Assembly (NCBI GenBank): GCA_025594325.1
Contig: JANHCV010000006.1
Span: 248,001-312,000 of the forward strand
From: Blastocladiella emersonii ATCC 22665
Lineage: Eukaryota; Fungi; Blastocladiomycota
Length of the DNA stretch: 64,000 bases
Direction: 5' to 3'
Every line of letters starts with the position of its first letter. Positions within the stretch are counted from its first letter, which is position 1. The notes under the pieces are model-generated. The model had not been told where the DNA came from. It saw nothing but the letters and a program-made list of their open reading frames with translations, and searched no databases. The translations under genes and the position numbers were made by a program. Below, piece after piece: positions 17,690 through 46,329 of this stretch.

Positions 17690-20600
17690 TTACAGCGCGT
17701 TGCACACCGCGGCGGCGTAGTCGCCCGAGTGCGAGATGGTCACCTTGACGTTCTTGGCGCCGACGGCGACGCGGGCCGCCTCGGCCGCGCCGTGGAGGCG
17801 GACCTCGGGCGCGCCTGACGCGGTCGGCAGGACCTCGATGTCCTTGAGCGGGGCGCCGGCGCCCTGGGTGAGCACCTTGGCGGCGTCGACCGACGACAGC
17901 GCCTTGACGACGGCCTCCTTGGCGGCCCAGCGGCCGGCGAACGACGCGGCGGGGTCGGGGCGCGACGCGCAGTACTCGATCTCGGCGGCCGTGAAGTTGC
18001 GCTCGATAAACGACTGCTTGGCATCCATGTCGGCGAACACGGCGACGAGCTCGATGTCGACGCCGACGCCGCGGGGCGCGGCCGCGCCAGTGTCCGCCGA
18101 CGCCTCGGCGGCGTTGGCGACCAGCGCGTGCTCGAGCCACTGCTGCTGCTCGCGCGACGCCGCGGCCTTGGCGGCGGTGCGCGGGTCGAGCGAGTCGAAG
18201 TTGTACGCCTGCGCCTTGGGGTCCCACTCGGCGCGCGCGGTCGGGTCGAGGTACACCTTGGCCTCCTGCTGCGCCGTGTACGGCGCGGCGTGCTTGACGT
18301 CGACAAAGTCGCGGGCGCCCGACAGGGTGTCGTGCCAGTAGCGGTACGCCTTGCGCTGGCGGACGGCGCGCTTGGCCGCGTAGTCCGAGTAGGCGTTCTC
18401 GCTCAGCGTGGCCAGCACGTAGTGCGGGTGGAGGACGAGCAGCTCGCCGCCGACCTGGCCGAACCCGAACGACTTGAGCAGCGCGGCCTTGACGCCGTCC
18501 GTCTGCATCGAGACGGACGGGTACAGCACGTTGGTGAACTGCGCGAGCTTGGCGTCGATGTTGTCGGCGTTGCGGTTGCCCGGGATGATGCCCGTGGCGA
18601 GCACCTGCAGCACGCCGTTGAGCATCCACGCGGCCGCGGCGCCCTTCGGGTGGCCCGTCAGGTACTTCTGGAAGATGGCCGGGACCGGGTTGCCCTTGGC
18701 GCGGCCGAGGTGCTCGAGCTGGCGGTGCACGACCTGCGACTCGTTGAAGTCGTTGGCCTTGGTGCCGGTGCCGTGGAACGACGCGACGCCAATGTCGTTG
18801 ACGTCGAGGCCCCACACGGCGAGGGCGCCGCGCAGCGGCGCAATGGTCGGGTCGCGCATCCAGAAGTCGTTGCCCCACGTGTTGAGCACCGACTTGGTCT
18901 GGCGGCGCGCGTCGCGCTCAATGGCCTCGCGGCGGACGGCGAGGAACTCGGCGCGCTCGGACTCGTCGGCGACGTTGGCGGCGGCCGCCTCGTGCACGAG
19001 CTCGTCCATCTCCTCCTCCATCCACTCGGCGACCTCGCGCAGGCGGCGCTCGATCTGCTTCTTGCGGTACTTGATGTCGAGCGACCGCGGCACGTAGTTG
19101 GAGGTGCCCGTCGACACCTGGCGCGCCGTGGTGAGGATGCCCTGGCCGGGCGCGGGCACGCTGCGGCCCTGCTTGTCGGTGGCCGTGTTGGACACGGCGA
19201 TCACGCCGTACACGGGCACGCCCATCTCGAAGGCGACGGACGCGCTCATGAGGATCTGGATGCCCGAGCCCTGCGACTCCATGAACCCGCCGCGGGTCGA
19301 GGTCGCGGGGCGGCACATCTCGCGCGGCGAGCGGCCCATGGCCATCTCGGCGTCGGCGCTCGACGTGGCCTTCATGTTGGCGAACTCGTACGAGCCCTCC
19401 TCCTGGAAGTCGTCGAAGCCGCCGACGACCACGATCTTGGCCTTGCCCGACTGGATCGTCTCGACGCCGATCTCGACACTCTCGACGGCCGTGGCGCACG
19501 CGCCGACCGGCGTCTTGATCGGACCGCTCGACGAGAGCAGGAGCAGGTTGACCCAGGCGGCCATCGTCTACGAGTTGCGAACGAGGATCAAGTCAGTGAA
19601 CGTCGAGCGAGCAGTATCACGGGGTGAGAAACAACGCACGTTGATGAAGCTCTCCTGGAGAATGTCGTTCTGGACGGGCTTGTCGAGGAAGCGGTCCTTG
19701 TAGATCTTGCGGTTGGCCATCATGCCGCCGACGCCCGAGCCCGACGTGTTGCCGACCTCGGTGACGTGCACGTACTTGTAGAACTCGTACGGGTCCGTGA
19801 TACCCGAGCTGACGAGGGCCTCGACCGTGCTGACGAGCACGTACAGCGTGATGGGGTCGACCTGCTCGACAATGTCGTCGGGGACGCCGTAGCGGCGCGC
19901 CGACCAGCCCGTCGGGATCTGGCCCGCGACCAGGCGGTCGAAGCGGAGCGCCTTGGGGACGAACAGCGTGGCCGACTTCTTGAGCGTGACCGACCACTGG
20001 CCCGACGCGAGCTCCTGGACCACGCACTTGGCGGGCCCGTGCTCGGCGAGGAACCGGTCGGCCTCCTCCTTGGACGCCTCGAACGGCGCGAGGTCCTCGT
20101 TCAGCACGATCTCCTGCAGCATCGTCTTCTGCTCGGGGTTGTAGCCGTCGAACAGCTCGGGCTCGATGAGGCGGATGCCCGTGTGCGCGATGATGCGCTC
20201 CTCGTACTTGGCCTTGATCTCCGTGTCCTGGACGGGCGCGCCGGACTCGGCGTCGACCCAGCCCGAGTACGGGCGGCCCTGCACGTTGCCGTGGAGGAAC
20301 TTGATGAAGCCCATCATCCACGCCATCTCGATGGCGCCCTCGAGCGACAGGTAGCCCGCGGCCTCCATCTCCCACCGCGTGCGCGCGTTGCCGTATGGAC
20401 CGACCTCGCCGAACCCGGTGATGACCACGACGCGGTCGAGGTCGACGGCGCCCTGCAGGTGGCCGAGCGTCGCGTGCAGGTCCTTGTACGACGGCAGGTC
20501 GGGGAAGTCGAAGGTCAGGTTGGCGCGCGGCGTGACCGTGAGCGGGGCCTTGACGGGGTCGACGGCCTGCTGGTCGATCTGGTTGTCGCGCAGGACGGCC

Positions 20601-23600
20601 TGGCGGACCTCGGCGGTGCCGAGCAGCTCGGCGCGCAGCGCCGCGACGTGCTCCTTGAGGTTGGGCAGCTGGTTCATCTTGCCCGCGAGGTCGGCGTGCA
20701 GGGCCTCCTCCTGGCTGAGGCGGGCGATCTTGGGGTGCATGAGGCACAGCAGGTTGAAGGCCATCTCGATGGTCGAGAAGGTGTAGACGCCGAGCGCCTC
20801 GATGCCCTGCGACACGAGGTTGTTGGACGACATGAGCCCGGTGCCGCGGGTCCAGCCGATGACGGCGCCGATCACGCACAGGTACTCGGACCACGACTCG
20901 GACTCCCACCGGTTGAGCAGCGTCTCGAGAGCGATCTTGGACTCGCCGTACAGGCCGTCGCCGCCAAAGGTGCCGTGGTTGGGCGACAGCGGGAGCAGGA
21001 CGTGCGCGGGCCGCGTGGTGGTCTCGCGCGCGCGCTTCTCGGCGACGACGAGGCCGAGCATGCGCAGCACGTTGGTGAGCATGAGGCGGTGCGCGAGCTC
21101 CGACTTGGAGTCGATGTCGGTGATCTCGCGGCCGTTCTCGGAGATGGCGGCGAAGGGGACGATGAAGTCGAGGTCCCAGCCGAGCTCGCCGTAGATGTAC
21201 TGGACGAGCTTCTGGGTGTCGGTGTGGCTGCCGGCGTTGAAGGGCACGATGACGAGCGCCGAGCCGCGGGACCCGTGCTGCTCGAAGATGGTGCGGTAGT
21301 GCTGGGTCGCGGCCTGCGAGAAGGACGACGTGGTGACGACGACCTTGGCGCCGGCGGACAGCGCGCCCTTGAGGACCGACGCGCCGATCGAGTCGCGGCC
21401 GCAGCCCGTGATGAGCATGGTCTTGCCCGCGAGCGACAGGCCCTCCTCGGCGACCTCGTGCATGATGCGGAACAGCGTGGCCGTCTTGTCGTCGTCGGCT
21501 GACCAGTCGCACGCCTTCCGCGACTTGATGTGCAGGTGGCCCTCCTTGTGCATCTTCTCGACGTAGGCGGCCATCTTGCGCACGCCGGCGCGCTGCACCT
21601 CGGCGTACTCGATCTTGCCCGCGTCGGTGAGCACGGTGCTCGGGCCGGTCGGCACCTCGACGTACTTGTACACGGGGTCGACGCCGGCCGCCTCCTTGCA
21701 GTTGTTGACGAGCTCGCGGCCGAGGCGGCGCACGAGGTCGTATTTCTGGTCGTCGACGTCGACGAAGAAGGGCAGGTGGTGGTCGAGCCAGTACTCCATG
21801 AACTCGATGACGGCGGGGTCGGCGCGGTTCATGACGTGCAGGCACTGCGCGATGAGGGCGCGGTCGACGTCGCGCAGGCGGCCGAAGATGATATCGAAGA
21901 ACAGCGACAGCACGTGCTGGCGGACCCAGTTCCACGCCGAGTCGAAGTGGCGCGCCTTGCGCGGCTCGAACATGGGCACGATCCCCTGCGCGTACGTGTC
22001 GCCGTGCTCGGCGACCCACAGGTCGAGCTGCGACTGGAGCGACTCGAGCGTCGCCGCCTGCTGGGCCACGATGCCCGCCGACGCGTGCAGGTCGACGTCG
22101 AGCGCCGAGGCCAGCGCGTTGAGCTGCGACGTCCACAGCTGCTGCTGCGACGCGAACAGGGCCTTGAGCTGCGCCGCGGACATGGCGGGCGCGGCGGCCG
22201 CGTTGCCCGAGCCCGAGGACCCGTCGGCCGACTTGTACTGGACGCCGGCGACCTGGGCGTACGCCTGGGCGACGGCGGCGAGCCACTTCTTGGCCTCGTC
22301 CTCGTTGGCGAGGCGGTTGGCGGGCTCCATCGTGCAGCCGAGGAGCAGCAGGCCGTCGGCGCGCTGCGGGCCGAGCCCGTACGCGGCCTTGAGGTGGTCC
22401 TTGACCATGGTCATGGTGAAGCCGCCGGGCATCTTGGCGGCGATGAGCTTGGACACGAGCGCCGTGGTGTGCTTGCCGAGGCCGGCGGCGGGGATCTGGG
22501 CCGCGAGCTCGTCGAGCGGCGTCTCCTCGGCGCGCTCGGGGATCGTGTTGATCTCCTTCTGCAGGTCGCCGAGAATCTCGTTCTGCATCGTCGACTTGCC
22601 GCCGACCAGGTCCTTGATGGTCTTGGACATGGGCAGCTCGGCGAGCGGCTTCTTGAGCTTCTGCGCGATGATGGCGCCGAGCAGCAGCGTCGACGCGATC
22701 GGCGCCTCGGGCACGTCCTCGGCCTGGCCACCGGCGGCGGCGGGCGCCGCGGCCACGGGAGCAGCAGCAGCGGGGGCCGAAGTGGCGGGAGCCGACGAGA
22801 TCGACGACGAACCGGCCGCGGGGGCAGCAGCCGCGACCTCCTCGTCCTGGAACTCGTAGTAAATGTCCTGGTGGTTGCGCGCGTACGAGAGGTTGGCGCG
22901 GCGGAAGGTGAGAGCGTCGTCGTAGGCCGTGTACTTGAGCTTGAGGGTGCGCTCGGCCATGCCGACGAGCGTGGACGAGGGCCCGACCTCGATGATGCGC
23001 TCGACCTTGTACTCGGCGAAGAGCACGTCCTGGGTCTCGATCCAGCGGACGGCCGACGCGAACTGGTACGCGAGCAGCTCGATGAGCAGCGTGTGGGCGA
23101 CGACCTGCTTGTCCTCGGGGGTCGCGAGCGCGAGCTTGGGCAGCAGCGCCTGGAGGACGGGCGACTGGGTCTGGTCGGCGACCGCGGCAATGTACTCGCG
23201 GGTGACGCGGAACGGCTTGGCCGTGAGGTTCGGGATGTAGCGGGCCTCGAGGCGCTGCGCGTGGATGTACGCGGGCTTGATCTTGCGCTGGAGGTACTCG
23301 CGGAACGGCGCGACGCCGGGGAGCAGGAACGACGAGTGGAACGGCACGTCGATACCGGCGAGCGGGATCGTGGCGTGGCCGCGCGCCAGCGGCATGTTCT
23401 TGAGGTCGGCAGTGCGCACGAGCTCCTCGAGCTTGGCCTGGTCGAAGACGCCGCGCGCGACCGCGTTGAGGACGAGCGTCAGGGCGTTGAGCCCCTGCAG
23501 GTCGCCGGCGACCACGTACTGCCACCCGTCGACGTTGTAGTTGACGATCTCGAGCAGGCTGCCCGTGACGCCGCGGACGTGCGCGACGAGGTCCTCGAGG

Positions 23601-26600
23601 TCCTTCTCCTTGAAGAACTTGTGGACGCGCGCCGGGTTGACGGCGCACATGCCGTAGTTGGACGACCCGTCGGCCGCGCGCACCACGGCGTGCTGCATGG
23701 TCATGCCGCGGTAGAAGACAATGTCGACGAGCGACTCAACGGGGAGCACGTCGGCGACCGACGCGAGCGCCGCGTACTCGCCGAGCGAGTGGCCAGCAAA
23801 GGGGCAGTCGGGCGGGACGAGGCCGTGCGCCTCCATGTCGGCGAAGGCGGCCTTCTCGACGAGCGTGAGGGCGGGCTGCGTGAACTGCGTCGCGTACAGG
23901 AGGCCCTGGGGCGCGTGGAACGTGTACGACTCGGTGTCCTCGGTGACGGTCGGGAACAGCGACTTGGTGGTGACCTTGCCGTCCTCGCCGACGGCGTCGT
24001 ACGTCATGGACATGTAGTTGGCGCGGATCGCGCGGCCGCGCTTGCCGCCGAAGTGGACCGTCTTGGCCTTGGGGTTGGTGCGGACGATCTCGATGATGGA
24101 GAACCCGAACTCGCGCTTGAAGTGGGCGTCGGCGCGGTCCCAGATCTCGCGGGCGACGGGCGACGACGCGTACAGGTCCATGCCCATGCCGACCTCCTGC
24201 GAGCCCTGGCCCGTGAACACGAAGCACGACGTGGCCTGCGCGACCTGCGCGGTCCCCTTGACGAGGACGCGGCCGTCGGCGGCCGCCGCCGTCGTCACGT
24301 CAATGATCTTGCGCCCGTTCTGCATGCCGACGTGGCGCAGCGTGGTCGTGAGCTCCGTGTTGGGGACGCACATGTCGACGAAGTCGACGGCGAACGAGAG
24401 CACGCGCGACGGCTGGTTCTCGGCGGCGTGCAGCTCGACGACGCGGCGGGTCATGGCCGACGTCCACATGCCGTGGGTGATGGTGTCGGGCAGGCCGGCG
24501 AGGTCGGCGAGCAGCGGGTTGGTGTGGATCGGGTTGTAGTCGCCCGAGACCGACGCGTACGCCGTGTTGGAGGCAGGCGCGGTGAACTTGGACGTGTGCA
24601 CCGTGTATCCGGCGCCGTTGGCGGCACCGGCGCCCTCGAACAGGCACGGCTGCTCGACGGTGACGCCGCCGAGGCGCTGGAGCATGGCGACGACGGGCGA
24701 CGTCTGGACGGCGAGCGGGTGGTCGCACGCGAACATGACGTGGCCGACGGTCAGGGTCTGCTCCATGTGGACCATCTCGATGGTGCCGGTCGTGTGCAGC
24801 GACGCGTAGGCGGTGCTGGACTGGTACTCGACGTGGGTCTTGAGGCGGAACACGAGCGTGGACCCGACGGCGACGGGGACGGGGCTGGCGGCGTCGAAGG
24901 AGATGTACTCCTTGGCCTCGAGCACGGCGAGGTCCTGCGGGCGGCGCACCGTGAGCGAGATGGGCTCCTCGTCGACGTTGTCGAAGGTGCGGTGGTAGTC
25001 GTCGAAGGCGCCGCGGACGAAGAAGGCCGACGTGACCTCGACGAGCGCGGTGCCGTCGCGCGCGAGCGTGCCCTTGACCGTGATCTTCTTGCCCGTCGGC
25101 GTGTTGGTCATGGAGATGACCTCGGCCTGGGTCTCGATCTTGTCGCCGGCGTAGACGAGCGACCCGGGGACGAGCACCTTGAACGAGTTGCTGAGGTGGA
25201 CGAGCTTGAGCAGGTCGCCGTCGATGAGGCCCGAGAAGAGCGGCTGCACGACGGCCTGCCACCCGGCGACGATGGCGTAGTCGAGCGGCGCCGCGAGCCG
25301 GTCCTGGCCGCGGTCGACAAACTGCTCGGCGTCGTTCTGGACCACCTTGCAGAACCGGGCGATCGAGTCGCGGTCGACGACGTGCGACGACGTGCACTTG
25401 CGCGCCTCGCCCTTGACCACCTCGGTGGCCCACAGCGCCGCGTAGAAGGCCTTGACGCGGGCGTTGCGGCCGTCGAGCTTCTCGTGGATCAGCGCGTACG
25501 GCGTCTCGGGCGAGTACCGGAACACGAGGTCGAGGCTGGCCGCGTGGTCGTCATACGCGTGCGTGAGCGTCATGGTGATCTCGTCACCCGCACCACGGCG
25601 GATCACGAGCCCGGGGGTGCGCGCGTCGTGCAGCGTGAGGGCGAGCTCGGTCGGCGTCACGGCCACGGACATGCCGGCGCGCGGCGCGAGGAGACGCGGC
25701 ACGTAGTTGTCGGCGAGCATGCGGCCCTGGACGACGTGCTGGGCGAGGACGAGCGCGCGGAGCCAGTCGGGGGCGCCGTTGCCTGCGACGAGCGTGGCGA
25801 GCCACGTCGCGGCCGCGGGGAGCTTGGCGGCGTCGGTCGGCAGCTCGAAGATGCGCTTCGGGCCCGAGACCGAGACGAGGACGTTGGCGGTGGACGGGCG
25901 GCCGGGGAGGGCAAAGTTGGCGAGGTACTCGCGGCGCGGGACGGCGGCGAGGTCGCCGTTGTAGAAGCGGTCGAGGACCGCGGCGATGTGGCCGTCGCGG
26001 ACCGTGTCGAGGATCTTCTTGACGGGCAGGTTGGCGACGTTGGCGTGGCGCGTGGCGACGGGGCCCTGCAGGATGCACACGCGCTGCGCGTCCTCGCCGA
26101 CGACGGCCTCGACGAACTCGGACTGCCACAGCGAGTCCTTCTTGTACCAGGCCTCGAGCGACTCGTCGAGCACGGGGATGAAGGGCGCGGGCTTGCGGAC
26201 CGGACTGGCGAAGGCCGTGAGCAGGAAGAAGACGTCCTCGGTCGTGAGCAGCTGCGCGTGCGCGCGCGGGAAAGCGGCGAGGAAGTCGGCGACGGCGGCC
26301 GTCGGGTCGGCCTTGACGCGGAGCGGGTCGAGGATCGAGTTGACCTTGGCGGCGGCGGCGCCCGACTTGGACGCGGACGCGGGCGTGAAGCGCTCCTCGA
26401 TGCGCAGCAGCACGTCCATGAGCAGCGAGCCGTACGACGCGTCGATCCAGCGCTGGAGCTTGGGCAGGTACGTGAGCTCGAGGATGCGGTTGGCGACCTC
26501 GGCGTACGTCATGTCGGCGAGGTCATCGGCGACGGACCCGTCGGCCTTCTTGCCGAACCACGGGCGGTGCGCGTCCTTGTTGAGGCGGTCGATGAGGTAC

Positions 26601-29600
26601 GCCTTGGACTCGCGGATCTTGGCGGCGCGCTTGTCCTTGGGCAGGTTGAAGACGGTGTCGTCGAGCTCCTTCCACAGCTGGACGCCGCGGGTCGCGACCT
26701 TGTGGATGGGCTCGCCGAGCTCGGACCGGACCGTGAGGATGCCGCCGGTCGGCTTGACGTACGTCTGCTCCCAGTCGGCCTCGTTCTCGACGCCGGGGCA
26801 CGCGACGATCAGCTGCTTGACGGCGTCGGACGTCTTGGCCTCCTTGGCGACCATCATGCGCGAGCCGAACAGGACCGCGTCGAAGGGCATGGCGGGGCGG
26901 GCAAATGCGAGGGCCCAGTCGCCCGTGAGGTACGGGAGCGAGTCCTCGACGCCGCCGAGCCCGGACCCGGCGACGAGCACGAGGTTCGGGCACCGGCGGA
27001 TCGCCGCGTAGTGCTCGAGGATCGGCGCGTGCATGTCCTCGAACGAGTGGTGGCCGCCGGCGCGGCCGCCGGTCCACTGCAGGATGACGGGGACGTGCGG
27101 GTGGGCCTCGGCGATGCGGACGACCTGGAGGATCGCGTCGGCCGATCCGGGCTTGAAGGCGACGTGCTTGATGCCGACCGAGGCCAGCGTGGTGAGGATC
27201 TCGGAGGCGACATCGGGCGACGGCACGCCCGCCGCGACACACACGCCCTCGACCGGGTACCCCTCGCGGCGCAGCGCCTGGACGAGCGGGTACTGGAACG
27301 CCCACTGGCGCGGGTTGAGGAACATCATGTTGATGGTGATGGCGTTGCCGGGCTCGACCTGCGCCATGATCGACTTGACCTTGTCGCGCAGCATGGCCTC
27401 AGTGAAGTGGCCGCCGCCGGCGAGCTCGATGTGGTACCCGGCGTTGAAGACCGCCGAGACGAACTCGCCCGAGACCGTGGTGGGCGTCATGCCGGCGACC
27501 ATGACGGGCGGGCGGCCGACGAGCCGCGTGAACTTGGTGTCGAGGTGCGTGGCGTCGCCGACGCGCACGAGCCGCGGGCGGTACTCGTCGGCCCAGTGCG
27601 CGCCGTACTGGATCTTGGCCTTGCGCGCGTCGAGCAGCGCGTTGAGCCCGAGCAGGCCCTGCGCGACCGTGGTGGTGAGCTCGGTCGCGGAAATCACCTG
27701 GATCCCCGAGCCCTCCTTGTTGCGGTGCAGGAGACCGCCGACGCCCGAGGCGCCGCCGGGACCGAAATCGACAAAGTGCGTGGTCGGCTTGTGCGCCGTG
27801 GCGAGCTCCCAGTCGACGGGGCGCACGCAGATCTCCTCGGCGAGGAACACGGCGAGGTCGGTCGGGTCGGTGATGGAGCGAATGTCCTTGCCTGTTTTCG
27901 GGGATCGGATGATGGTTAGCGTCGTGGTTCTCGACTCGTTCCCCGAGAAAAAGAAAGCGTACCGAGCTCGGTCGAGTACACGGGCATGGCGAGCTTGGCG
28001 GCGTTGAACTTAACGGCAAACTGGGTGCCGACGGCCTCCTCCACCGCCAAACGGATCTTGTCGACGGCGGGGGCGAGGTAGGGCGAGTGGAACGGCGCCG
28101 AGATGGGGAGGAACCGAGCCGTGAACTTGAGCCCGCGCTTGCCGAAGGGGACGCGCGACTCGTCGGTAGCGGCGGGGGTGCGGACCTTGCGGAGTCGGAG
28201 GCACAGGCCGTAGAGCGACTGGGGCGGGCCGGCGACGACCGTGTTCTTGGGCCCGTTGACGAGGGCGACGTGGATGCGCTTGTCCTCGGGCAGGTGGCGG
28301 TTGGTCTCGGCGACGTGGAACCGCAGCGTCTTGAGCGGGAGCGCGCCCGACACGGCGAGCATGGGCGACGGCGTGCCCTCGGCATTGTCGGCCGAGTCGC
28401 GCGTGATGCGCGGCGGCAGCGACGTCGGCGGGAACGCCAGCGTCGCCTGCGTGCCAATGTGGAACAGCAGCGTCAGCGCCTGCAGGGCGTGCTCGAGGAA
28501 CGACGCGTCCGAGTCGGCCGACGCGATGGCGACGGCGGGCACGATGCCCTGCGAGTGGCCCGTCGCGGCTACGATGACGAAGCGTGAGTCAGTGATCTGG
28601 GTCGCGAACACGGCGGTCGAGGATGAAACGGGGTGGCGTGGCGCGTCGACCAGCTGCCGCGTCCCGAGCGGAGAAACTCTCGACGCTGCGCGGGTGGCTG
28701 GCTCGCGCGTATCGTGGCGCGGGAACACCGCGAACAAGTGCCCGAGAAAAAAACGTACCAGAGAACCACGAGCGGCGCGCCTCATCAAACGACCCGCCGG
28801 CGGCCTTGACGGCGACGGCGTACCAGGCGAGCTGGGTGAGGCCGATGAGCGGGAGCGAGACGGGCGCCGAGACGAGGTAGTCGGTGTCGGGGACGTTGGT
28901 GTTGGCGAGCCACTGGCGCACGCGCAGGCCGTTGGGGAACACGCTGCGGACGTCGGCGGGCGACGCCTTGAGCAGCGCCGCGAGGTGCGCGTCGGCCGCG
29001 TCGACGAAATCGCCCACGAGCGGCGCGTACACGGAGGCCGCGCGGCGCAGCTCGTCGAGGTACTCGGTCGTGTTGCCCTGGCCGCCGAACACGGCGAACA
29101 CGGACGGCGTCTTGGCCGAGGCGGTGGCGGGCGACTTGCCCTTGGCCGAGACGGCGACGGTCGACTCCTCGGCGCCGGCGTCGGCGGGCGACGACGGGCG
29201 GTCGAAGAGTGCGGGGCGCGGGGGCGTGACGAGGGCGAGGACCGAGTCGCGCAGCTCGCCGGCGGGGAGGTAGCGGGCGAGGGTGTCGACGGCCGAGTAG
29301 TAGGCCTTGAGGACGGCGGGGCGGTGGTCGCCGGCGGCGAGGTGCACGTTGTTGTCGCCGAGGTAGCGGCGGTGCATCTCGACGACGAGGGCGCGCAGCA
29401 GCGGGAGCGACGCCGACGCCTTGCTTGGCGCGGCCGGGGCCGCGTCGTACGCCGAGATCTCAGTGAAGACGGTGGCGGTTGGGGACGACGACGACGGCGA
29501 CGCGGGCGCGGAGGCGCGCGGGGCCGGGACGCCCGTCGCGGCGACCTTGCGGCACGTGGTGTCGACGACGGCGAGGTACGCCGCGTACACGTCGAGCTCC

Positions 29601-29830
29601 GATACGGCGTCGGGGGCGTCGGCGCCCTCGGACTTGGCGGCGAGGCCGAGGTCGGGATCGGCGCCGTGCAGGGCCTCCTCGGCCATGAAGTAGAGGTCCT
29701 GCGGCAGGAACAGCGAGATCTCGTGGCCGTGGCGCGCGAGCGTGAACTGGCGCAGCATCGGCGTCGCCGCCGCGGTGGTGGTGGTGTCGGCCTGGGCGGC
29801 GGCGGCGGGGGTGGTAGCAATGATAGCCAT
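17690..29830 (-). CDS. FAS: Single-chain fungal type I fatty acid synthase (AT-ER-DH-MPT-ACP-KR-KS-PPT), 4 exons, ~3935 aa
   Basis: Exons 29830-28759, 28568-27963, 27891-19640 and 19567-17690 total 11808 nt in frame. Motifs by domain: AT TGHSQG; ER WTGGRAGGHHS; DH SGDYNPIH; MPT FAGHSLGEY; ACP GGKSTMQNEILGDL; KR TGCGRDSIG; KS TPVGACATA, FHGTGT and LTGHPKGAA; PPT GVGVDIE..FAGRWAAKEA..ISHSGDYAAA. Confidence 0.97.
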
Positions 29831-31557
29831 GGTGGTTGGTGCAACGGTGCAATCGAGTAGAGGAGGAGAGGAGGGCGAGTCGCGTGTAGGTGTAGATATA
29901 CAAAAGAGCTCACTACTGAAGCGCGCGCGAGGAGGACGAGTGTGAGCGGGCGATCGGGACGACGAGTTGGCGGCGGCGAGCGCGATGCGTACGGTAGAGC
30001 GATATACAGGGGACGGCTAGCACGCGCACGCAGAGAGGAGAGAGTTGTCGACGACGGTGAGCTCCCGTGGGAACGGACGAGGGGGGAGGAGGGAGGACGG
30101 TCGAGCGCGCGAGAGAGAGGGAGGACGGGGGGCGGCACGACCTTTTGAGCAGAGCGAGGAACTCTGCGCTGCGAGGAGATGGGTGGGGGGCTGTCGTGCC
30201 GCGTGCGTCGATGCAAAGTCGCAGGAAGTCGCGGGCGGGGCCGTGAGACGCGATGGCGGGGCTGAGCGCGCCGGTGACGGGCGGGCGGGCGGGCGGGCGG
30301 GTGCTGGGGACGGCCGCGCGCGGCGGCGGATCTCCCCCAACACGCGCCCTGCACGCGACGCGCATCCACCCGGCGGCGCGATAGACGTGGCGCCACGGCG
30401 GCGAAACTGGCGAATGGAGCTACGCGGCGCGAAATTGGCCGCTCGACGCGAACAAGCGGGCGGCGGAAAGCAGTGCGCCAAGCGACGCGGCCGGCTGCTC
30501 GGCTCGCCCGCACGCACCCGCGCTATTCCGGGCGACGCAACCTTGGGGATCGCCAGCCAGCCGGCTCCACGCTGGTCGCCGCTGATACGGCGCCCGCGCC
30601 ATCAACCTTGTCGCGTTCATGCGCGAGAGGGGCCGACGCGATCTTGATCGGGCCTCGTCCTCTCTCCCGCACGCACGCACGCCACCGCGGCCGTCGCACC
30701 GCTCATCGCATCGCACCGCGGTCGTGATTGCGCAGAGTTGTGGGAGTCGGGTGCGGGTGCTGTGCAGCGCGAGGGCGGGCGACGACGGCCGAGACTCGCG
30801 GAGAGAAGTCCGAGACCCTTGGCCACGACGCGGGCACACGCGAACCCGACCCGGGAACGCCGATCGCTTCCAGAGCGCGCCTCACACGACGTGCTGAGCT
30901 GCAGGGAGTGCAGATCCCGATTGGACGGGTTGGTTGGGGTGGGAGCCGCACCGGCTTCCTGGACCGCTGGGCTGCAGCGTGCGTGATGGGGGTGGCAGCG
31001 GCGGGCGGGTTGGGGCGCCGCGGGCAAAGCGGTGGGGACCGGTTTCGGAATCGCGGGTCGCGGCAGGCGAGGCGCCACTTTGCGACGTCACAGCGCTCGG
31101 GAATTTGTCTCTGCCTCCGCTCGCTCGCCGCGCCGCGCCGCACCCGCGCTACGCTCCGCCCTCGTCCCCTTGACCGCTTTTGGGGGTCGCCGCTCCCTCC
31201 ACCAGCCTCGAGCGCACCCGCACGCGCTCCATGGAACACGCCTAGGCTCGCGCGATCGTCGTTGCCCGTTGCCCGTCCTCCCTGCTCTGCTCAGCGATAC
31301 AAGAGAGACCCGAGCCCCCCGCCCGCCCCGCCGACCTTCGCGGCGCGTGTCCCTCCCCTCCCCTCGACCTACACTCCAACCCGTTTTGATCCCTCGCAGC
31401 AGCAGCGTGGTCTCGGCAGCATCGTCCCCCTCCCTCGTCTGTCCCTGCCGCTCGCTCGCTTTCCTCCCTGTACAGAGCCGCCCTCGGCACCCTACACCTC
31501 TGTAAACCACCCTCCACCTCCATCGCACCCACCACCGACACCATCATCATCACCAGC
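29831..31557. promoter_or_regulatory. Shared divergent (bidirectional) promoter region of FAS and ACC1
   Basis: The 1727 nt between the two start codons contain no recognisable gene. It includes (GGGC)5 at 30279-30301, GCGCGAAA followed by ATTGG at 30427-30438, and a CRE-like TGACGTCG on the minus strand at 31083-31090. Confidence 0.6.
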
Positions 31558-34500
31558 ATGACCCGCCTTCGCCGCGCCAGTCTGCAGTCGGGCTCCAGCG
31601 CCGTGCGCGAGTACGTCGAGCGCATGGGCGGCCACTCGCCGATCCAGAGCGTCCTCATTGCCAACAACGGCATCGCCGCTGGTACGCTCGATTCTCTCTC
31701 CTCGCCACGAGCGCCGCCGTCGAGAGCCAGCCGACTGACCACGACCGCGCGCTCGCACCAGTCAAGGAGATCCGCTCGGTCCGGAAATGGGCGTACGAGA
31801 CCTTCGGCGACGAGGGCCTCGTCAAGTTCGTCGCCATGGCCACGCCCGAGGACCTGTCGCACAACGCCGAGTACATCCGCATGGCCGACCACTTCATCCC
31901 GGTCCCCGGCGGCTCCAACAACAACAACTACGCCAACGTCGACCTGATCGTCGAGCTCGCCGAGTCGGCCGGCGTCGACGCCGTGTGGGCCGGCTGGGGC
32001 CACGCCTCCGAGAACCCGCGCCTGCCCGACCGCCTCGCCGAGAAGGGCATCGTCTTCATCGGCCCGCCCGGCAACGCCATGCGCGCCCTCGGCGACAAGA
32101 TCTCGTCTACCATCGTCGCCCAGTCCGCCAATGTCCCCACCATGGGCTGGTCCGGCGACGGCATCGTCACCGACGCCCGCAACGCCGACGGCATGATCGA
32201 CGTCCCCGAGGACCTCTACCTCAAGGCCTGCGTCACCGACGTCGAGCAGGCCATCGAGGTCGCTGACCGCGTGGGCTACCCGCTCATGGTACGCTGATTC
32301 TGCTTTCTTGGCGCGCGACCAACCAGATCGCTCACCCGCTCTCCCACCCGTCCGCCCGAATAGATCAAGGCGTCCGAGGGCGGCGGCGGCAAGGGCATCC
32401 GCAAGGTCACGGACCCGTCGCAGTTCCGCGCCGCGTTCGCGCAGGTTGCCGCCGAGGTGCAGGGCTCGCCCATCTTCCTCATGCGCCTGGCCTCGAACGC
32501 GCGCCACCTCGAGGTCCAGATCCTCGCCGACGCGTACGGCAACGCCATCTCGCTGTTCGGCCGCGACTGCTCGGTCCAGCGCCGCCACCAGAAGATCATC
32601 GAGGAGGCCCCCGTCACCATCGCCGACCCGAGCATCTTCGAGGACATGGAGATGTCGGCCGTCCGCCTCGCCAAGCTCGTCGGCTACGTCAACGCCGGCA
32701 CCGTCGAGTTCCTCTACGACGTGGCCTCGAACAAGTACTACTTCCTCGAGCTCAACCCGCGCCTGCAGGTCGAGCACCCGACCACCGAGATGGTCTCGGG
32801 CGTCAACATCCCGGCCGCGCAGCTGCAGGTCGCCATGGGCATCCCGCTGCACCGCATCCCGCACGTGCGCATGCTGTACGGGCTGCAGCCGCATACCACG
32901 TCCGAGATCGACTTCCACTTTGACCACCCGCAGTCGCTCACGATCCAGCGCAAGCCGGCGCCGACGGGCCACGTCATCGCGTGCCGCATCACGGCCGAGA
33001 ACCCGGACGCCGGGTTCAAGCCGTCGGGCGGGCATCTCGTCGAGCTCAACTTCCGGTCGTCGACGGACGTGTGGGGCTACTTCTCCGTGTCGGCCAACGG
33101 CGGGCTGCACGAGTTTGCCGACTCGCAGTTCGGCCACGTGTTCGCGTACGGCCACGACCGCCACTCGTCGCGCCGCAACATGATCATGGCGCTCAAGGAG
33201 CTGCGCATCCGCGGCGACTTCCGCACCACGGTCGAGTACCTGATCACGCTGCTCGAGACGGACGAGTTCGCCAACAACCACTTCTCGACCGAGTGGCTCG
33301 ACGCCCGCATCCAGCAGAAGCTCACGGCCGAGCGGCCCGACCGCTGGGTCTCGGTCGTCACGGGCGCCGCCACCATGGCCTTCCTCGCCGCCGAGGACCA
33401 GAAGGCCCAGTTCCTCAAGTCGCTCGACAAGGGCCAGGTGCCCACGCTCGCCGGCATCAAGGACCAGTTCTCGACCTCCTTCATCCTCGACGGCGTCCGC
33501 TACGACATTGCCGTGACGCTCGCCGCGCGCGACCTGCTCGTCCTGCGCCTCAACGACTCGCACGTCGTGGTCCGCGCCCGCGCCCTCCCCGACGGCGGCG
33601 TCCTCGTCACGTACGCGCAGAAGTCGCACGTCACGTACGCGTCCGACGACGTGGCGGGTACCCGCCTGTCCATCAACGGCCGCACCGTGGTCCTCGAGCA
33701 GGAGACGGACCCGACGCAGCTCCGGTCGCCGTCGCCCGGCAAGCTCGTGCGCTGGCTCATCCCCGACGCCGGCCACGTCGACGCCGGACAGGCGTTCGCC
33801 GAGATCGAGGTCATGAAGATGATCATGCCGCTCGTCGCCACCGACGCCGGTACCTTCGCGCCCGGCCGCAAGCAGCCCGGGTCACCCATCGCCGCCGGCG
33901 AGATCCTCGCCGTGCTCGAGCTCGACGACATGTCGCAGGTCAAGACCGCCGAGGTCTGCGTCGAGCCGTTCCCGTCGTCGATCGCCCGCTCGACGTCGTC
34001 GGCGTCGCTCCTGTCGGCCGCCACCGCCGCGTCCCCGGCCTCGGCCGTCGTCGTCGGCAAGGCCAACAAGGCGCACCAGCGGTACCTCGACCTGCAGCAG
34101 GTGCTCGACCAGGCCGTCGACGGGTTCGAGCAGGTGCAGCCCGTCGCCTCGCTGCTGACGGCGTACCTCGACGTGATCCACCGCCCCGAGCTGCCGTTCC
34201 TCCACACGGCGCAGGTCCTCGGCAGCTACCACGGCCGGCTGCCCAACGGGCTCGAGGGCAAGCTGCTCGACCTCGTCTCGCCCGCGTCGACCGAGACCAC
34301 GCCGTTCCCGGCGGCCGAGCTGCTCGCGCTCCTCGCCACGGTGCCCGACCAGGCGGCCATCGCGCCGATCCTCGAGGTCGTCCACAAGTACGAGGCGGGC
34401 GCCGACGCGCACGCCGTCGCCGAGCTCAACCGCCTGATCCGCCGGTTCCACGCGTCCGAGTCGCCGTTCATGTCGGGCGGCGACGCCGTGCACACCGAGA

Positions 34501-37500
34501 AGACGGTGCTCGAGCTCCGCACCCGCATGGAGCCCGAGGCGCTCTACTGGACGTGCTTCTCGCGGTCGCGCGCCGCGTGGAAGGGTAAGGCCATCGGCGC
34601 CGTCCTCGACCTCGTCGCCGCCCAGCGCTCGGTCCTCGCTCGCTCGCCCAACGTCCAGAAGCTGTACACGGCGCTGCACCAGCTCGCCGAGCTCGGCGGC
34701 GCCAACGCCGTCTCGGTCGCGGCCAAGGCCAAGGGTGCCCAGTCGGTCCAGCTCCGCGCCCGCGCGCTGCTGATCGCGATGCAGCTGCCCGGGTTCGACG
34801 AGCGGTACCGCCAGTTCTGTGACGTGACGCGCGCGGTCGCGGCGCTGCCCGAGGCGTCGCCCGCCGCGCACGAGGAGGCCATGAACCTCATCAACTCGCC
34901 CTTCTCCATCTTCGACGTGCTCCCCTCGCTCTTCTACGAGCACGACGTGCCCGCCGTCGACCGCCTCATCGCCCTAGACATGTACGTGCGCCGCGCCTAC
35001 AACACGTACCGCGTCCACGCCGTCAAGAAGCACGACGCGTTCCCCGTCCCGCTCGTCGAGTGGCACTTCCAGTTCCCCGCCCACGATCTGGGGATTGGAA
35101 ACGCGTCGGCCGCGGCCGCCGGCGGGTCGGCCTACGACAACCTGCGCACGGCGTCGGTCTCGGACATGACGCTCATGATCAAGCGCGGCGACCTCGGCCC
35201 AGTCCGCGTCGGCGTCATGGCCGCCGTCCGCGACGCCGCCGAGCTCCAGCAGCACCTGCCCGCGATCCTCGCGCTGTTCCCGCAGGTCAAGGCCAAGAAG
35301 CTCGGGCGCACCGAGCCGTGGCACGTGCTCAACGTCGCGGTCGAGGTGCCCGCGGCCAACGCCGAGGACGACGAGGCCGACGACGGTGCCGACGCCGACG
35401 CGGCGCTGTCGTCGCTGTTTGGGTCGCTGCTCGCGTCGTCGACGGCGGCGCTCCGGTCGCGCGGGATCCGCCGCGTCACCATGGTCGTGTACCGCAAGGG
35501 CCAGTACCCGCGGTACTTCACGTTCCGCGAGCGGCTCGCGTTCGGCGAGGACGCGACGATCCGCAACATCGAGCCGTCGCACGCGTTCCAGCTCGAGCTG
35601 TACCGGCTCGCGCGCTTCAACCTCGTGCCCGTCGCCACGCCCACCAACCGCAGCATCCACGTCTACCACGCCGTCGGCAAGGACAACGCGCTCGACTCGC
35701 GGTTCTTCGTCCGCGCGCTCGTGCGCCCTGGCCGCCTCACGCCCGGCGCCGGGCAGCGGTCGACGGTCGAGTACCTCACGGCCGAGGCCGACGGGATCCT
35801 CACCGACACGCTCAACGCGCTCGAGCTCGCAGCCGAGCGGTTCCCCAACACCGACTGCAACCACCTGTTCCTCAACTTCCTGCCCGAGCTGCCCGTGTCG
35901 CCCGACGAGGTGCAGGACTCGTTCGCCGGGTTCCTGATGCGCCACGGCAAGCGGCTGTGGAAGCTGCGCATCACCAGCGCCGAGATCCGGTTCCTGTGCC
36001 ACCCGCCGACCACCGGCGCCGAGACCACGACGTACCGGTTCTTCGTGTCGAACGTGTCGGGGGTGATCAAGGCCGAGCGGTACCGCGAGGTCAAGGACGA
36101 CCGCGGGCGCGTCGTGCTGCACACCGAGGGCACGTCGTCCGCGTCGGGCAAGGGCGAACACCACCTCGCGCCCGCCGACTGGGCGTACCCGAACAAGGAG
36201 AAGGTGCAGCCCAAGCGGCACCGCGCGCACGTCATGGGCACCACCTACGTCTACGACTACCTCGACCTCGTCCACGAGGCGCTCGCCCAGCAGTGGGCGC
36301 GGTACCCGCACCTCGCGCGGCCCGCCGGCAACCTCGTCGACGCCGTCGAGCTCGTCCTCGGCGAGGACGGCGCCCTGCGCAAGGTCACCCGCCCGATCGG
36401 GTCCAACACGTGCGGCATGGTCGCGTGGCTCGTCGAGATGAAGACGCCCGAGTGCCCGCGCGGCCGGTCCATGGTCCTGATCGCCAACGATATCACCTTC
36501 GCCATCGGGTCGTTCGGCCCGCAGGAGGACGACGTGTTCGCCGCCGCGTCCAAGCTCGCCCGCGAGCTCGGCGTCCCGCGCATCTACGTGTCGGCCAACT
36601 CGGGTGCCCGCATCGGGCTCGCCGACGAGGTCCTCGCCGCGTACCGCATCGCGTGGGTCGACCCGCGCGACCCCGCGCTCGGGTTCAAGTACCTGTACCT
36701 CACGCCCGAGGACTACGACCGCCTGCGCGACTCGGTCACGGTCGAGCGCGTCGTCGACGACGTCACGGGCGAGACGCACATGCGCATCGTCGACGTGATC
36801 GGGATCAAGGACGGGCTCGGCGTCGAGAACCTCATGGGCTCGGGCCTGATCGCCGGCGAGACGTCGGCCGCGTACGACGAGATCTTCACGGCCACGCTCG
36901 TCGCGTGCCGCTCCGTCGGCATCGGCGCGTACCTGGTGCGCCTCGGCCAGCGCGCGATCCAGTGCGACGGCCAGCCCATCATCCTCACGGGCGCCGCGGC
37001 CCTCAACAAAGTGCTCGGCCGCGACGTGTACACGTCGAACCTGCAGCTCGGCGGTGTCCAGATCATGCACCGCAACGGGATCTCGCACCTCACGTGCATC
37101 GACCCGCTGCACGGCGTCGCCCAGATCATCCAGTGGCTCAGCTACGTCCCCGCCCACCGCGGCGCGCCGCTCCCGATCCTCCTGGCGCCCATCAGCAACC
37201 CGGCAACGATTGCGGCCGCGCACCCGGCTTCGGCCTTCTCGACCACGGCGTCCTCGGTCGTCGACGGCGCCGCCGCCGACGCGGCCGCGTCCCAGTTCGA
37301 CGAGGCCGACCGCGACATCGGGTTCGCGCCGACAAAGTCGCCGTACGACCCGCGCCACATGCTGCACGGGCACCACGACGAGTCGGGCGCGTGGGTCGGC
37401 GGGTTCTTCGACCGCGGCTCGTGGATGGAGACCATGGACGGGTGGAGCAAGACGGTCGTCGTCGGCCGCGGCCGTCTCGGCGGAGTCCCCGTCGGCGCGA

Positions 37501-38774
37501 TCGCCGTCGAGACGCGTGCCGTCGAGGCCGTGATCCCCGCCGACCCGGCGAACCCGGACTCGGCCGAGCAGACGGTCGTCGAGCCGCCCGGCGTGTGGAC
37601 GCCGGCGTCCGCGTACAAGACGGCGCAGGCGATCCGCGACCTCGGCCGCGAGGGTCTCCCGCTGCTCATCTTCGCCAACTGGCGCGGGTTCTCGGGCGGC
37701 CAGCGCGACATGTTCGACGCCATCCTCAAGTTCGGCAGCTACATCGTCGACGCCCTGCGCACCTACCCGCGGCCCGTGTTCGTCTACATTGTCCCGCACG
37801 GCGAGCTGCGCGGCGGCGCCTGGGTCGTCCTCGACCCGTCGATCCACCAGAGCGGCGGCATGGAAATGTACGCCGACGCGACCGCCCGCGGCGGCGTCCT
37901 CGAGCCCGAGGGCATGGTCGAGATCAAGTACCGCAAGCCCCAGCTGCTCAACACGATCGACCGCCTCGACGACGACTGCCGCCGCTGGAAGTCCAAGCTC
38001 GCGCCCGCGGCTGCTGGTGCCGCCGCCGCTGACGCCAAGTCGGCCGGCGACGCCGCTACGCCCAAGAAGCACGACTCGGCGACCAGTCTCGCGACGGTCG
38101 GCACCACCGCCGCCACGGCGTCGACGGCGTCGTCGGACTCGGACGACGAGAACCCCGCGGCGACGCGCGCGGCGCTGCAGGCGCAGCTCCAGTCGCGCCA
38201 GGAGTCGCTGCTGCCCGTGTACCACCAGGCCGCGCTCAAGTTCGCCGACCTGCACGACACGCCCGGGCGCATGAAGGCCAAGGGCGCGGTGCGCGCCGTG
38301 CTCGAGTGGACCCGCGCCCGCGCCTTCTTCCACTGGCGCATCCGCCGCCGCATCGCCGAGGACCGTCTGCGCGACCGCGTCCGCGCCGCGTCGCCTGATC
38401 TCGCGCGCGGCGACGTCGACGCGCTGATCCGCGCGTGGTTCAACGAGGCCCACGCCAATACCGCCGTGAACTGGGACGAGGACAACGTCGTCGTCGCCAA
38501 GTGGCTCGAGGCCGCCGAGGCCGAGGCGGGTACGACCGCGGAACCCGCGTCCGTCGCCGCCAAGGTCCAGGCCAGCATCGACGCGCTCGAGGTCGCGCAC
38601 CTCGGCGCCCTCGTCGCTAAGATTCTCCGCGACAAGCCCCAGGCCGCCGTCGCGGGGCTTGCCCAGGCGCTGCTCGGCGGCGGCGCTGCGGGCGCGGCCG
38701 CGCCCCAGCAGGGCATGGCATCCGCGCTCGCGTCGTTCGCGCAGCTCGCCACGGTGCTTCGCCCGGCCCAGTAG
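31558..38774 (+). CDS. ACC1: Acetyl-CoA carboxylase (BC-BCCP-central-CT), 3 exons, ~2353 aa
   Basis: Exons 31558-31681, 31762-32288 and 32364-38774 join in frame. Motifs: VLIANNGIAAVKEIRS, IKASEGGGGKGIR, ELNPRLQVEHP, the biotinyl EVMKM (Lys codon 33816-33818), ANSGARIG, FANWRGFSGGQRDMF and GGVLEPEG. Confidence 0.98.
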
Positions 38775-40193
38775 ATGGATGATGTTGAGTTTGAATTTTC
38801 GTATATGGTTTTGCGTGTTTGTTCTCCACATCGTTGACTCGTGTTGTCCTTGATCTGCGTGCCGAGAAAGGAGGCGAAGTTCGCGAGACTTTGACGATGG
38901 CCGTGATCGCTCACGATGGCCATGGTCGCGCAGCTTGCTCGAGATGCGGAACACAACGAACACCTCGAGGGCGGTGCGGTAGACCTTTCCAGCGACCCGT
39001 CTGCATGAGCGGCGTCTAGTTTCTATCGCGCCCGGACCAATTACGGTCGCGCATCCTTTTGTGAGACGACTACAGAGACTTGAGAGCAGCGGTGGTGAGG
39101 GCGAAAATGGGACGAGATGCGATCAAATCAACGCGTGGACATCGCGGTTGAGGGTCACGCTGAGTTTGGACTGCTGTTCGTGCAGCAAACAACTTGCCCT
39201 ACAGTTCAACGTTACCATATTCCCGTCGATTGATCATGTAATCAATCGCGATCAAACTAGTTCACGGGTGCTCACGACCCTTGACCGCTCGATCAAACGA
39301 AAGTAGTCGTAGCCGTCCTCCCACGTTTGCACTCCCTGATTCTTGGGTTCCCTGGTTCAGCTTACCAGTGGTAGCTAGCCGCGACCGACGTCGTTGTCGA
39401 CGAGCCGCCCGTCAACGACGCGATGCGTTTCCGCTTCCGCGGCGCGGCGAGGGGCGCGGTCCTTGCTTCGTTGGACTGTATCGTCGGAAGAGTAGCGCTT
39501 GATGGACTCGGCTCAGGGTCGGGCTCGGGGTGCGGCTCCATCACCGCAATCTGCGAGGAACTGCTGGGCGGGAGCCACGCGTACCCTGCGACCTGCTCGA
39601 CAACGACCGGTACTCCGCCACACACGCTCGCCGTTACCGCGCGCACCTCGTCGTGCGGTAGGTGTACACGTGCAACTCGGCGCGTGCGTGGCCGTGTACC
39701 TGGGCGCAACGCACGCCACGACGGTGAGACGGACCGCGACCTTGACCGGGTTCGCGGTGAGCGCGGAGTGCGCCATGCCGAAGTCGGTGCGGCCGTTGAC
39801 GACGGGGAGCGCAAGCGCCTTGAGCCGCGGCTCGTGCGCAGGATCCACACGACGAGCCACGCGGGGCCTGACATTCATGAGCATTTTGAGCTACCAGGCC
39901 ATCTTCCGATAGCTACGCTGACGCACGAGGTCCAATCGCCTTACACGAAACGGGGTTTCGTTCGCGTCGTTCATAACACGTGTGTCCGTGACGTCACCGT
40001 GATCGTAGGGCCGGCACGCTCGAAAGGTTCGCAAAGCGCGGGATCTTGTAACCGATGAATATAACGCTTGAGAACTGAAGCGTGTAGAGAGGGTCTATCG
40101 AGGCTAAGGGAAACGGCAGGGGTGAGTCAGCGGGCGGGAGGCGTTTGGCTTCGCGGGACATCTTCAGTCTCCGCGCTCCCTCCACCCAATGCA

Positions 40194-43100: not shown

Positions 43101-43634
43101 TACATCTTCGACTTCTTCATGCTGTCAGGCGCGCGCATCGTCGAGGTCAAGCATGAGCGCGACGGGCTATTCGGCGTGCTTATTTTCAACACGCTTCGCC
43201 TGATTCTTCCACACGGACCTGGTACCGAGGGGACGCTGGTCCTTGAGGGCTCTATGGCGTTTGACCCCTCGTTTGGCCGTGATCCTGCGCAAAAGCATCT
43301 GATCCCGATGTTCGCTGATGCTCGCCGCCATTTTACCGGCCAAGGTCAAGACAGCACTTCTTACACGACGTTCATGGAAACTCTCACGCTGTCTACGGAC
43401 GAGCTTGACTTTTTCATGGAGTACGTCGCCTGCGCGGCCCTTTCCACGCCAGCAGCTCCTGACACTTGTGCGGAGGATCCACGTTTCAATGCGCGGTACT
43501 ACGAGAAGCTGGCGCCCGAGCTCAAACCAGCTTTCTTCCTGCCGCTCTTCCCGATTTGCGGTCGGGAAAACCTGGGGCCTTGTGCGCGCGCGTTTCTCAA
43601 CACCCAGGTCTGTGAGCGGCTTCCCCGCCAATAA
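40194..43634 (+). pseudogene. DUF4470-family protein, copy 1, disrupted by a solo LTR and an in-frame stop
   Basis: DUF4470-like LVCGGSDMGDLVRTL..EVIARNMLLF..QLWYSLLL is present. There is an insertion at 40788-40939. A TAA at 41398-41400 falls inside a segment that is open in copy 2. The intron 41957-42018 is at the same position as in copy 2. Confidence 0.75.
40788..40939. mobile_element. Solo LTR (152 bp) with 5-bp target-site duplication CCGTG
   Basis: It starts TGTAACG and ends CGTGACA (TG..CA, 6/7 inverted match). CCGTG flanks it at 40783-40787 and 40940-40944. Removing the insert plus one TSD restores ..EQTLRAVRHCWQPW.. in frame. Confidence 0.85.
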
Positions 43635-43866
43635 AGTATGACCGATGTTTTTGTTCAAACTCGATCGCGAACTTGATGTGAAAGCGGCGTGGTGAGGCGA
43701 CGCAGTAAACGTGGGGCCGCCCGTGTGTGGCGCAACGCGTCGACTGCGCCACAACGCACTTGTCGACGAACGTCAATCATCGATTGTCCACCCTAAAACT
43801 CGTTAATCTTACCGAAACAAGTCTATTTATAAGCACAAAAATCACAGGTTTACCTCTTCTTTAACC

Positions 43867-45684: not shown

Positions 45685-45741
45685 ACGACGTGGATGTAGA
45701 GAGCGCAGTTGGAGCGAGACGTGTTGGCGATTTCAAATAAA

Positions 45742-45777
45742 GTGCGGCGGTGCGGCGGTGCGGCGGTGCGGCGGTGC
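45742..45777. repeat. 8-bp tandem repeat (GTGCGGCG)4.5
   Basis: Read directly from the sequence, just upstream of the RT ORF. Confidence 0.9.
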
Positions 45778-46329
45778 TGGCGCTAAACTGTCCACCTGTC
45801 TCGTGAGTGGCGCCTAAAACAGATGAGTCGACACTACACGCGGCTGTGCCCGCGGGTTGCGTAGCACAGGTGTTGCATTCGAACTTCAGTTGAAGACTCA
45901 CACTCAATTGAATGCATCTCCCGGTGGAACGTATCGTACTCAGGCGCGCGAGAAGCAAAGTCGTAATCGTGGGTTACATCGAACTGCATCCCGCCTGCAC
46001 TACTTGGTGTCGTTTAACAGCTCGTCTTTCTTTCTGTCACTTGCAGGGAGTTAAAAGAAATCATCTGGTGCTGGATGTCGTGCAGGAGAGACGCAAAGTG
46101 AAAGGTCGGGCCACCGCCGATCCCGCTTTGGATCACCTGACCGCGTTGCGCCACTCGATCGCACGCGTTTCGGCAGCCGCGTTTCCTTCGCCCACACCCC
46201 ATACCGTCCAAACGAACGCAAACAAACCAAAAAGAAGGTTTTAGGAGTGGAGAGAAGCCTGCTGTAGACCCGGTACCCACTTTCAGCAACGGTTCCTCCG
46301 CGATCAACAAGAGTCGATCGCACCCAATT

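Follow-up and report, generated by a model that had tools for sequence, protein, structure and literature searches.

We analyzed a 64,000-nucleotide (nt) stretch of the genome of the blastocladiomycete fungus Blastocladiella emersonii ATCC 22665 (contig JANHCV010000006.1, positions 248,001 to 312,000; here called the window), in which the genes for fatty acid synthase (FAS; minus strand) and acetyl-CoA carboxylase (ACC; plus strand) are arranged head-to-head, with no gene recognized between them. The two genes form a genuine divergent pair of ancient origin, which most parsimoniously was gained once, and we consider it probable that the pair has been kept because the spacer between the genes carries regulatory DNA that serves both of them or is interleaved between them.

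The FAS-ACC pair in the order Blastocladiales

The genomic context of the FAS and ACC orthologues was inspected species by species in five Blastocladiales genomes, including that of B. emersonii. In the four further genomes as well, ACC (plus strand) is directly preceded by FAS (minus strand), and the pair is thus kept in 5 of the 5 genomes sampled. Since the same arrangement recurs in four other genomes, the pair is more than a chance juxtaposition, and its conservation throughout the sample argues against a one-off rearrangement. The initial annotation had named absence of the adjacency from close relatives as grounds for giving up its proposal; the pair was instead present in B. britannica, Catenaria, Allomyces, and Sorochytrium. 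The distances from the FAS ATG to the ACC ATG in these species were as follows:

Blastocladiella britannica: 1222 nt
Catenaria anguillulae: 2384 nt
Allomyces javanicus: 2117 nt
Sorochytrium milnesiophthora: 1133 nt

Across the five species, the spacer measures 1.1 to 2.4 kb and varies twofold in length. Each relative's spacer is bounded by start codons, as in the window, and the FAS and ACC start codons of the window align with those of their orthologues. According to the NCBI taxonomy, the carriers represent three families of the order, and the Sorochytrium proteins are only approximately 53% (FAS) and 49% (ACC) identical to those of the window. Being head-to-head, with no gene recognized in between, and kept amid changing surroundings, FAS and ACC form a conserved divergent same-pathway pair. 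The possibility of an assembly or annotation artifact is practically negligible, given that five independent assemblies show the same arrangement and that both proteins were rebuilt exactly from the window. The two genes and their spacer are composed as follows:

17690-29830, minus strand: single-chain fungal type I FAS gene, 3935 amino acids (Pfam; 100% match to P0121; exact splicing)
29830-28759, 28568-27963, 27891-19640, and 19567-17690, minus strand: the four FAS exons (GT..AG splicing)
Between these exons, minus strand: three FAS introns of 190, 71, and 72 nt
29831-31557, no strand: divergent spacer from FAS ATG to ACC ATG, 1727 nt, 70% GC, in which both promoters and both 5' leaders presumably lie
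31558-38774, plus strand: multidomain ACC gene, 2353 amino acids (Pfam; 100% match to P0001; exact splicing)
31558-31681, 31762-32288, and 32364-38774, plus strand: the three ACC exons (GT..AG splicing)
Between these exons, plus strand: two ACC introns of 80 and 75 nt

Both proteins were recovered residue by residue, up to the stop codon, from window exons spliced at GT..AG, and the translations are 100% identical to the B. emersonii ATCC 22665 proteins P0121 (FAS, 3935 amino acids) and P0001 (ACC, 2353 amino acids), which are encoded on one 2.02-Mb contig. This reconstruction agrees exactly with the start codons (29830 and 31558), strands, coordinates, and 1727-nt spacer length of the initial annotation, and its description of both genes as complete was borne out by full Pfam domain sets and by the recovery of both stop codons. 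The same holds for the gene-free spacer: a search for protein domains, RNA families, and tRNAs returned no Pfam match even at E values up to 1, no Rfam match, and no tRNA, none of its open reading frames (ORFs) is conserved among the relatives, and there is no second copy of it within the window. A hidden gene or RNA in the spacer was rejected on these grounds.

Pfam analysis of the minus-strand ORF pieces identified FAS_N, SAT, Fas1 helical, meander, DH, MaoC, acyl transferase, ACP, FAS_I_H, KS, and ACPS domains. As judged from the Pfam matches to the exon pieces, the polypeptide runs from FAS1-type (AT/SAT, ER region, DH, MPT) to FAS2-type (ACP, KR region, KS, PPT) domains, and the protein is a single-chain, i.e., fused beta-alpha, fungal type I FAS. 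It is encoded by the sole FAS gene found for B. emersonii. A single-chain FAS is by itself ordinary among non-Dikarya fungi and Agaricomycetes; orthologues of approximately 3.8 to 4.2 thousand amino acids were common among the protein matches from chytrids, Mucoromycota, Zoopagomycota, and Agaricomycetes. In Catenaria anguillulae, FAS is annotated as two tandem genes for proteins of 1916 and 1888 amino acids, which are 279 nt apart (L002:1074-3243). Residues 1413 to 2138 of the B. emersonii FAS align unbroken over the annotated gap, and because of this continuity, the gene was probably split in error during annotation, where the MPT domain contains a small intron or frame change.

On the plus strand, Pfam identified Biotin_carb_N, CPSase_L_D2, Biotin_carb_C, BT, biotinyl, ACC_central, and carboxyl transferase domains. 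With BC, BT, BCCP, ACC_central, and CT in one chain of approximately 2200 to 2400 amino acids, the protein is an ACC1-type enzyme, and its gene is the sole intact ACC gene found for B. emersonii. Two further ACC copies were noted in this species. The second copy, P0005 (annotated with 1759 amino acids; L006:10489-16437), is located on another contig, and its DNA is 91% identical to positions 31862 to 37771 of the window. It starts within exon 2, stops short of the stop codon, lacks the spacer, and does not adjoin FAS. The third copy, P0007, has 1408 amino acids. In the ACC tree, P0005 and P0007 have branch lengths of 0.13 to 0.14, compared to 0.002 for the intact FAS-linked copy, and these long branches suggest that both are decaying segmental duplicates.

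Distribution and ancestry of the pair

The pair was not found in the other fungal lineages that were checked. (i) In Paraphysoderma, which belongs to the sister class Physodermatomycetes, FAS and ACC are on different contigs, and ACC is surrounded by unrelated genes in the middle of its contig. (ii) Inspection of the loci of the chytrids Spizellomyces and Rhizoclosmatium and of the neocallimastigomycete Piromyces revealed no FAS-ACC pair. (iii) The same was observed for the Mucoromycota Linnemannia, Mucor, and Mycotypha, which were checked directly. (iv) The ACC and FAS matches of approximately 20 further Mucoromycota, Zoopagomycota, and Basidiomycota are on different contigs, a comparison that is only indicative since it is based on the longest contig of each protein cluster. 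(v) None of 39 environmental ACC loci in a metagenome scan, among which the blastoclad-like contig of P0006 is not included, contained FAS, which holds for the 9 environmental ACC loci, of unassigned taxa, whose upstream sequence extends over at least 3.4 kb. The environmental locus L037 (62% identity) is uninformative because it comprises only 1.6 kb upstream. A literature search, of incomplete coverage and hence no proof of novelty, found no description of an ACC-FAS pair and no expression data on the two genes. These data are in line with the statement of the initial annotation that no standard ACC-FAS pair is known in fungi.

Two candidates for an independent origin were rejected. In Mycotypha, ACC and FAS share one 3.7-Mb contig, yet they are not adjacent. 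In Rhizoclosmatium, a carboxylase 6 kb from FAS is not an ACC1 but a bacterial-like fused enzyme of 1083 amino acids that is arranged tail-to-tail with FAS. This Rhizoclosmatium globosum protein (L010:29332-32922), encoded downstream of FAS, contains BC, BCCP, and carboxyltransferase (Carboxyl_trans and ACCA) domains and no ACC_central domain; it is a bacterial-style fused acyl-CoA carboxylase that was possibly acquired horizontally.

This distribution bears on the proposal that the pair is an adaptation to a lipid-fueled zoospore life cycle. All carriers are zoosporic Blastocladiales, as that proposal would predict. However, it fails because other zoosporic fungi, namely, Spizellomyces, Rhizoclosmatium, and Piromyces, as well as the blastoclad Paraphysoderma, are without the pair; the distribution tracks phylogeny and not lifestyle. 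The data contradict the idea, and we regard it as very improbable.

In the FAS tree, Paraphysoderma and one metagenomic sequence are sister to a group formed by Sorochytrium and the core Blastocladiales, and the defining nodes have support values of 100 in the Shimodaira-Hasegawa-like approximate likelihood ratio test (SH-aLRT). The ACC tree is congruent with the FAS tree, with an SH-aLRT support of 91 for the node uniting Sorochytrium and the core group. Because of this congruence, both genes are regarded as vertically inherited, and a single gain on the Blastocladiales stem fits the data. The pairing was thus, most parsimoniously, gained once on that stem, after the split from the Physodermatales. 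In the ACC tree, the B. britannica protein clusters with that of Catenaria (SH-aLRT of 94), apart from B. emersonii, and the spacer has a GC content of 46% in B. britannica versus 70% in B. emersonii. Blastocladiella may be non-monophyletic, or its base composition may have shifted strongly.

Surroundings of the pair, anatomy of the spacer, and reasons for linkage

Downstream of ACC, the five genomes have no genes in common, apart from two that B. emersonii shares with Catenaria, and since the flanking genes are mostly unconserved, the linkage of the pair stands out like an island. No other intergenic interval in a relative's locus is as long as the spacer between FAS and ACC (1.1 to 2.4 kb versus 41 to 1175 nt). 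It is the largest local target for breakage and is intact in 5 of 5 genomes, which favors selection for linkage.

The two genes shared with Catenaria are located at positions 48533 to 48808 (minus strand) and 49424 to 51425 (plus strand) of the window; in Catenaria, they follow ACC within approximately 7 kb. The segment from 39000 to 48500, which separates them from ACC in B. emersonii, is a block of approximately 10 kb that is rich in repeats and transposable elements, has a lower GC content (0.57 to 0.66; approximately 0.57 to 0.73 in the window), and contains a reverse transcriptase ORF (43870-45732, minus strand). These features suggest a zone of transposable element insertion within older synteny.

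Ten long ORFs of the window were scanned for further genes of lipid metabolism near the pair, and none was recognized. The neighbors among these ORFs comprise a DNA polymerase B, orphan ORFs, a retroelement reverse transcriptase, and a Suf/CstF77 protein. The family B DNA polymerase, with exonuclease and polymerase domains, is encoded at 4517-7012 (plus strand), and the Suf/CstF77-type HAT-repeat protein extends over two ORFs at 53650-56787 (plus strand); neither is lipid related. A wider lipid cluster was consequently rejected. Metabolic clusters are expected to comprise three or more genes, and the long ORFs scanned added none to FAS and ACC, so that the term "mini-cluster," which had been applied to it, is an overstatement.

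The spacer itself shows a strand asymmetry. At each of its ends, the sense strand of the gene next to it is rich in pyrimidines, C in particular, and 5 of 5 species have the same polarity. The following segments can be distinguished in B. emersonii:

29831-30300, minus strand: FAS-proximal spacer, purine-rich on the plus strand and hence pyrimidine/C-rich on the FAS sense strand; putative FAS 5' leader
30301-31099, no strand: central spacer of approximately 0.8 kb, which lacks the sense-strand C excess seen in the flanks; possibly the upstream regulatory region between the two transcription start sites
Approximately 30900-31050: G-rich stretch in the central spacer
31100-31557, plus strand: ACC-proximal spacer, C/T-rich; putative ACC 5' leader

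The coding regions carry the same sense-strand C excess as the spacer ends. Because of this match, the skewed ends (approximately 29831 to 30300 and 31100 to 31557) are suggested to be transcribed leaders of approximately 450 nt each, around a center of approximately 0.8 kb. The distance between the putative leaders, as estimated from the skew, would then be approximately 0.8 kb, compared to an ATG-to-ATG distance of 1727 nt (1133 to 2384 nt in the relatives).

Searches for shared control sequences returned a small number of matches. (i) An 18-mer in the central spacer (30414-30431) is identical in 17 of 18 positions to a site in the Catenaria spacer and is absent from the other species. (ii) A 23-nt block, identical in 21 positions and containing GCAGATAGATACAGCA, is shared by Catenaria (L002:8116-8138) and Sorochytrium (L004:9335-9357); in both, it has the same orientation and a distance of approximately 0.5 kb to the FAS ATG, and the other three spacers do not contain it. 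(iii) The sequence CCGCTCGCTCGC occurs twice in the ACC-proximal spacer (31117-31128 and 31448-31459), and its 8-mer core is present in all five spacers. (iv) In B. emersonii, an exact 12-mer precedes each of the two ATGs by approximately 286 to 299 nt. What is conserved across the species is the arrangement, the rough size of the spacer, and its strand asymmetry, not any detectable sequence.

The conservation of the pair within the order, together with its non-detection in other fungi, suggests rather than proves that shared control DNA holds the genes together. According to the explanation that we favor, the 1.1- to 2.4-kb spacer would hold upstream regulatory DNA serving FAS and ACC jointly or interleaved between them, and the genes would not share a single compact core promoter but have two divergent promoters, closely apposed within one regulatory and chromatin domain. 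A break in the spacer would uncouple the genes that supply (ACC) and consume (FAS) malonyl-CoA or damage the expression of either one. Such promoter entanglement would penalize the separation of the genes, and the pair would be kept in each sampled descendant while its neighbors were reshuffled. A bolder form of this explanation takes the spacer to be a bidirectional regulatory module that cannot be divided, a eukaryotic "operon equivalent" of de novo fatty acid synthesis; for as long as the Blastocladiales have existed, it would have linked the production of malonyl-CoA to its consumption at the level of transcription, with selection against uncoupling keeping the two largest lipogenic genes together. 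We advance this form only tentatively, as a possibility that may well not hold.

A number of observations weigh against a role of shared control DNA. (i) The five spacers cannot be aligned, and pairwise local alignment produced short blocks only. (ii) The only 8-mer common to all five spacers, CCGCTCGC, varies in position and orientation and is no more frequent in the GC-rich window than expected by chance. (iii) Seeded searches for 10-, 12-, and 14-mers across the spacers did not clearly beat shuffled sequences (fractions of 0.15, 0.05, and 0.28, respectively). (iv) The mirrored 12-mer is not significant with respect to dinucleotide shuffles, and nothing comparable was found in the other species. 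(v) Yeast ACC1, FAS1, and FAS2 are unlinked yet co-regulated in trans, and linkage is therefore not needed for coordination. (vi) The baseline for neutral loss of linkage rests on a handful of flanking genes and not on whole genomes or a genome-wide rate. As to the motif tests used, short shared cis-elements could slip past them.

Some of these points would also be expected if the linkage were a neutral historical accident, in which two genes with independent promoters once became neighbors, have not yet been separated, and derive no function from their proximity. Besides the lack of a conserved cis-element or alignable block in the spacers, this account is favored by the two downstream genes shared by B. 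emersonii and Catenaria, which demonstrate that some microsynteny survives without obvious reason, and by the sample of five genomes only. It has to accommodate, however, that the pair is kept in all of these genomes over three families and approximately 50% protein divergence, that the other neighbor of ACC differs in nearly every genome, that no intergenic target in the locus is larger than the spacer, and that the two enzymes are known to catalyze consecutive pathway steps. We consider a neutral accident somewhat unlikely.

The initial annotation had envisaged a single shared bidirectional promoter that fixes the stoichiometry of supply and consumption. The divergent orientation, the conservation of the pair, and the mirror-image compositional skew are compatible with one compact promoter whose shared core elements fire both genes and set their expression ratio. 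The enzyme ratio is, however, also determined by translation, turnover, and ACC phosphorylation, as is generally known. In addition, no shared or mirrored motif clearly exceeds chance, the spacer length varies twofold between species, and the estimated distance between the transcription start sites is still approximately 0.8 kb. In fungi, the mean divergent intergenic distance is 1343 bp, and bidirectional promoters are usually defined by distances of <1000 bp (PMC2871058), a limit that is exceeded by the ATG-to-ATG distances of 1.1 to 2.4 kb. With spacers of this size that are unalignable and contain motifs not clearly above shuffles, a promoter of this kind is unsupported and, in our view, improbable.

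Comparison with known systems

Among the closest parallels are the genes of two-subunit fatty acid synthases. Aspergillus fasA and fasB are divergently transcribed, and divergent FAS1-FAS2 pairs have also been documented in Tremellomycetes (PMC4513080). Like these, the FAS-ACC pair consists of very large, head-to-head genes of fatty acid synthesis that have a common intergenic region and are conserved within a clade. In contrast to the FAS1-FAS2 pairs, which encode two subunits of one complex with 1:1 assembly, FAS is here a single chain, and its partner is the preceding enzyme, ACC. The fungal nitrate assimilation cluster fHANT-AC, which comprises three genes and has been transferred horizontally in its past (PMC2040219), is similar in that genes of one primary pathway are co-located in fungi; it differs from the FAS-ACC pair, which has two genes only, is vertically inherited, and has no further lipid gene recognized among the ORFs scanned in the window. 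More generally, conserved gene order has been tied to transcriptional and functional relations, and conserved divergent pairs of related genes are a recognized class (PMC2871058). Because such pairs are already known in general, the advance made here is modest. The pair nevertheless provides a simple, synapomorphy-like genomic marker that distinguishes Blastocladiales from Physodermatales, and for genetic tools in B. emersonii, the spacer is a candidate for a strong, divergent promoter region of lipogenic genes.

Classic divergent same-pathway pairs include GPAT/AIRC of purine synthesis, HSP60/HSP10, and H2A/H2B, which have spacers well below 1 kb and demonstrated shared promoters. The FAS-ACC pair resembles them as a set of functionally linked divergent genes whose adjacency outlasts the surrounding gene order, but its spacer measures 1.1 to 2.4 kb, and promoter sharing is putative. 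Lipogenesis has two committed enzymes, ACC and FAS, whose genes are normally not linked and are coordinated in trans; to our knowledge, the two are co-regulated in every system studied. In Saccharomyces cerevisiae, ACC1, FAS1, and FAS2 are located on three chromosomes and are coordinated via ICRE/UAS-INO sites with Ino2/Ino4. The need for coordinated ACC and FAS expression is the same in the Blastocladiales; whereas yeast relies on transcription factor sites shared in trans, the Blastocladiales genes are physically linked. This order-wide physical coupling constitutes a natural experiment on whether linkage itself aids metabolic coordination.

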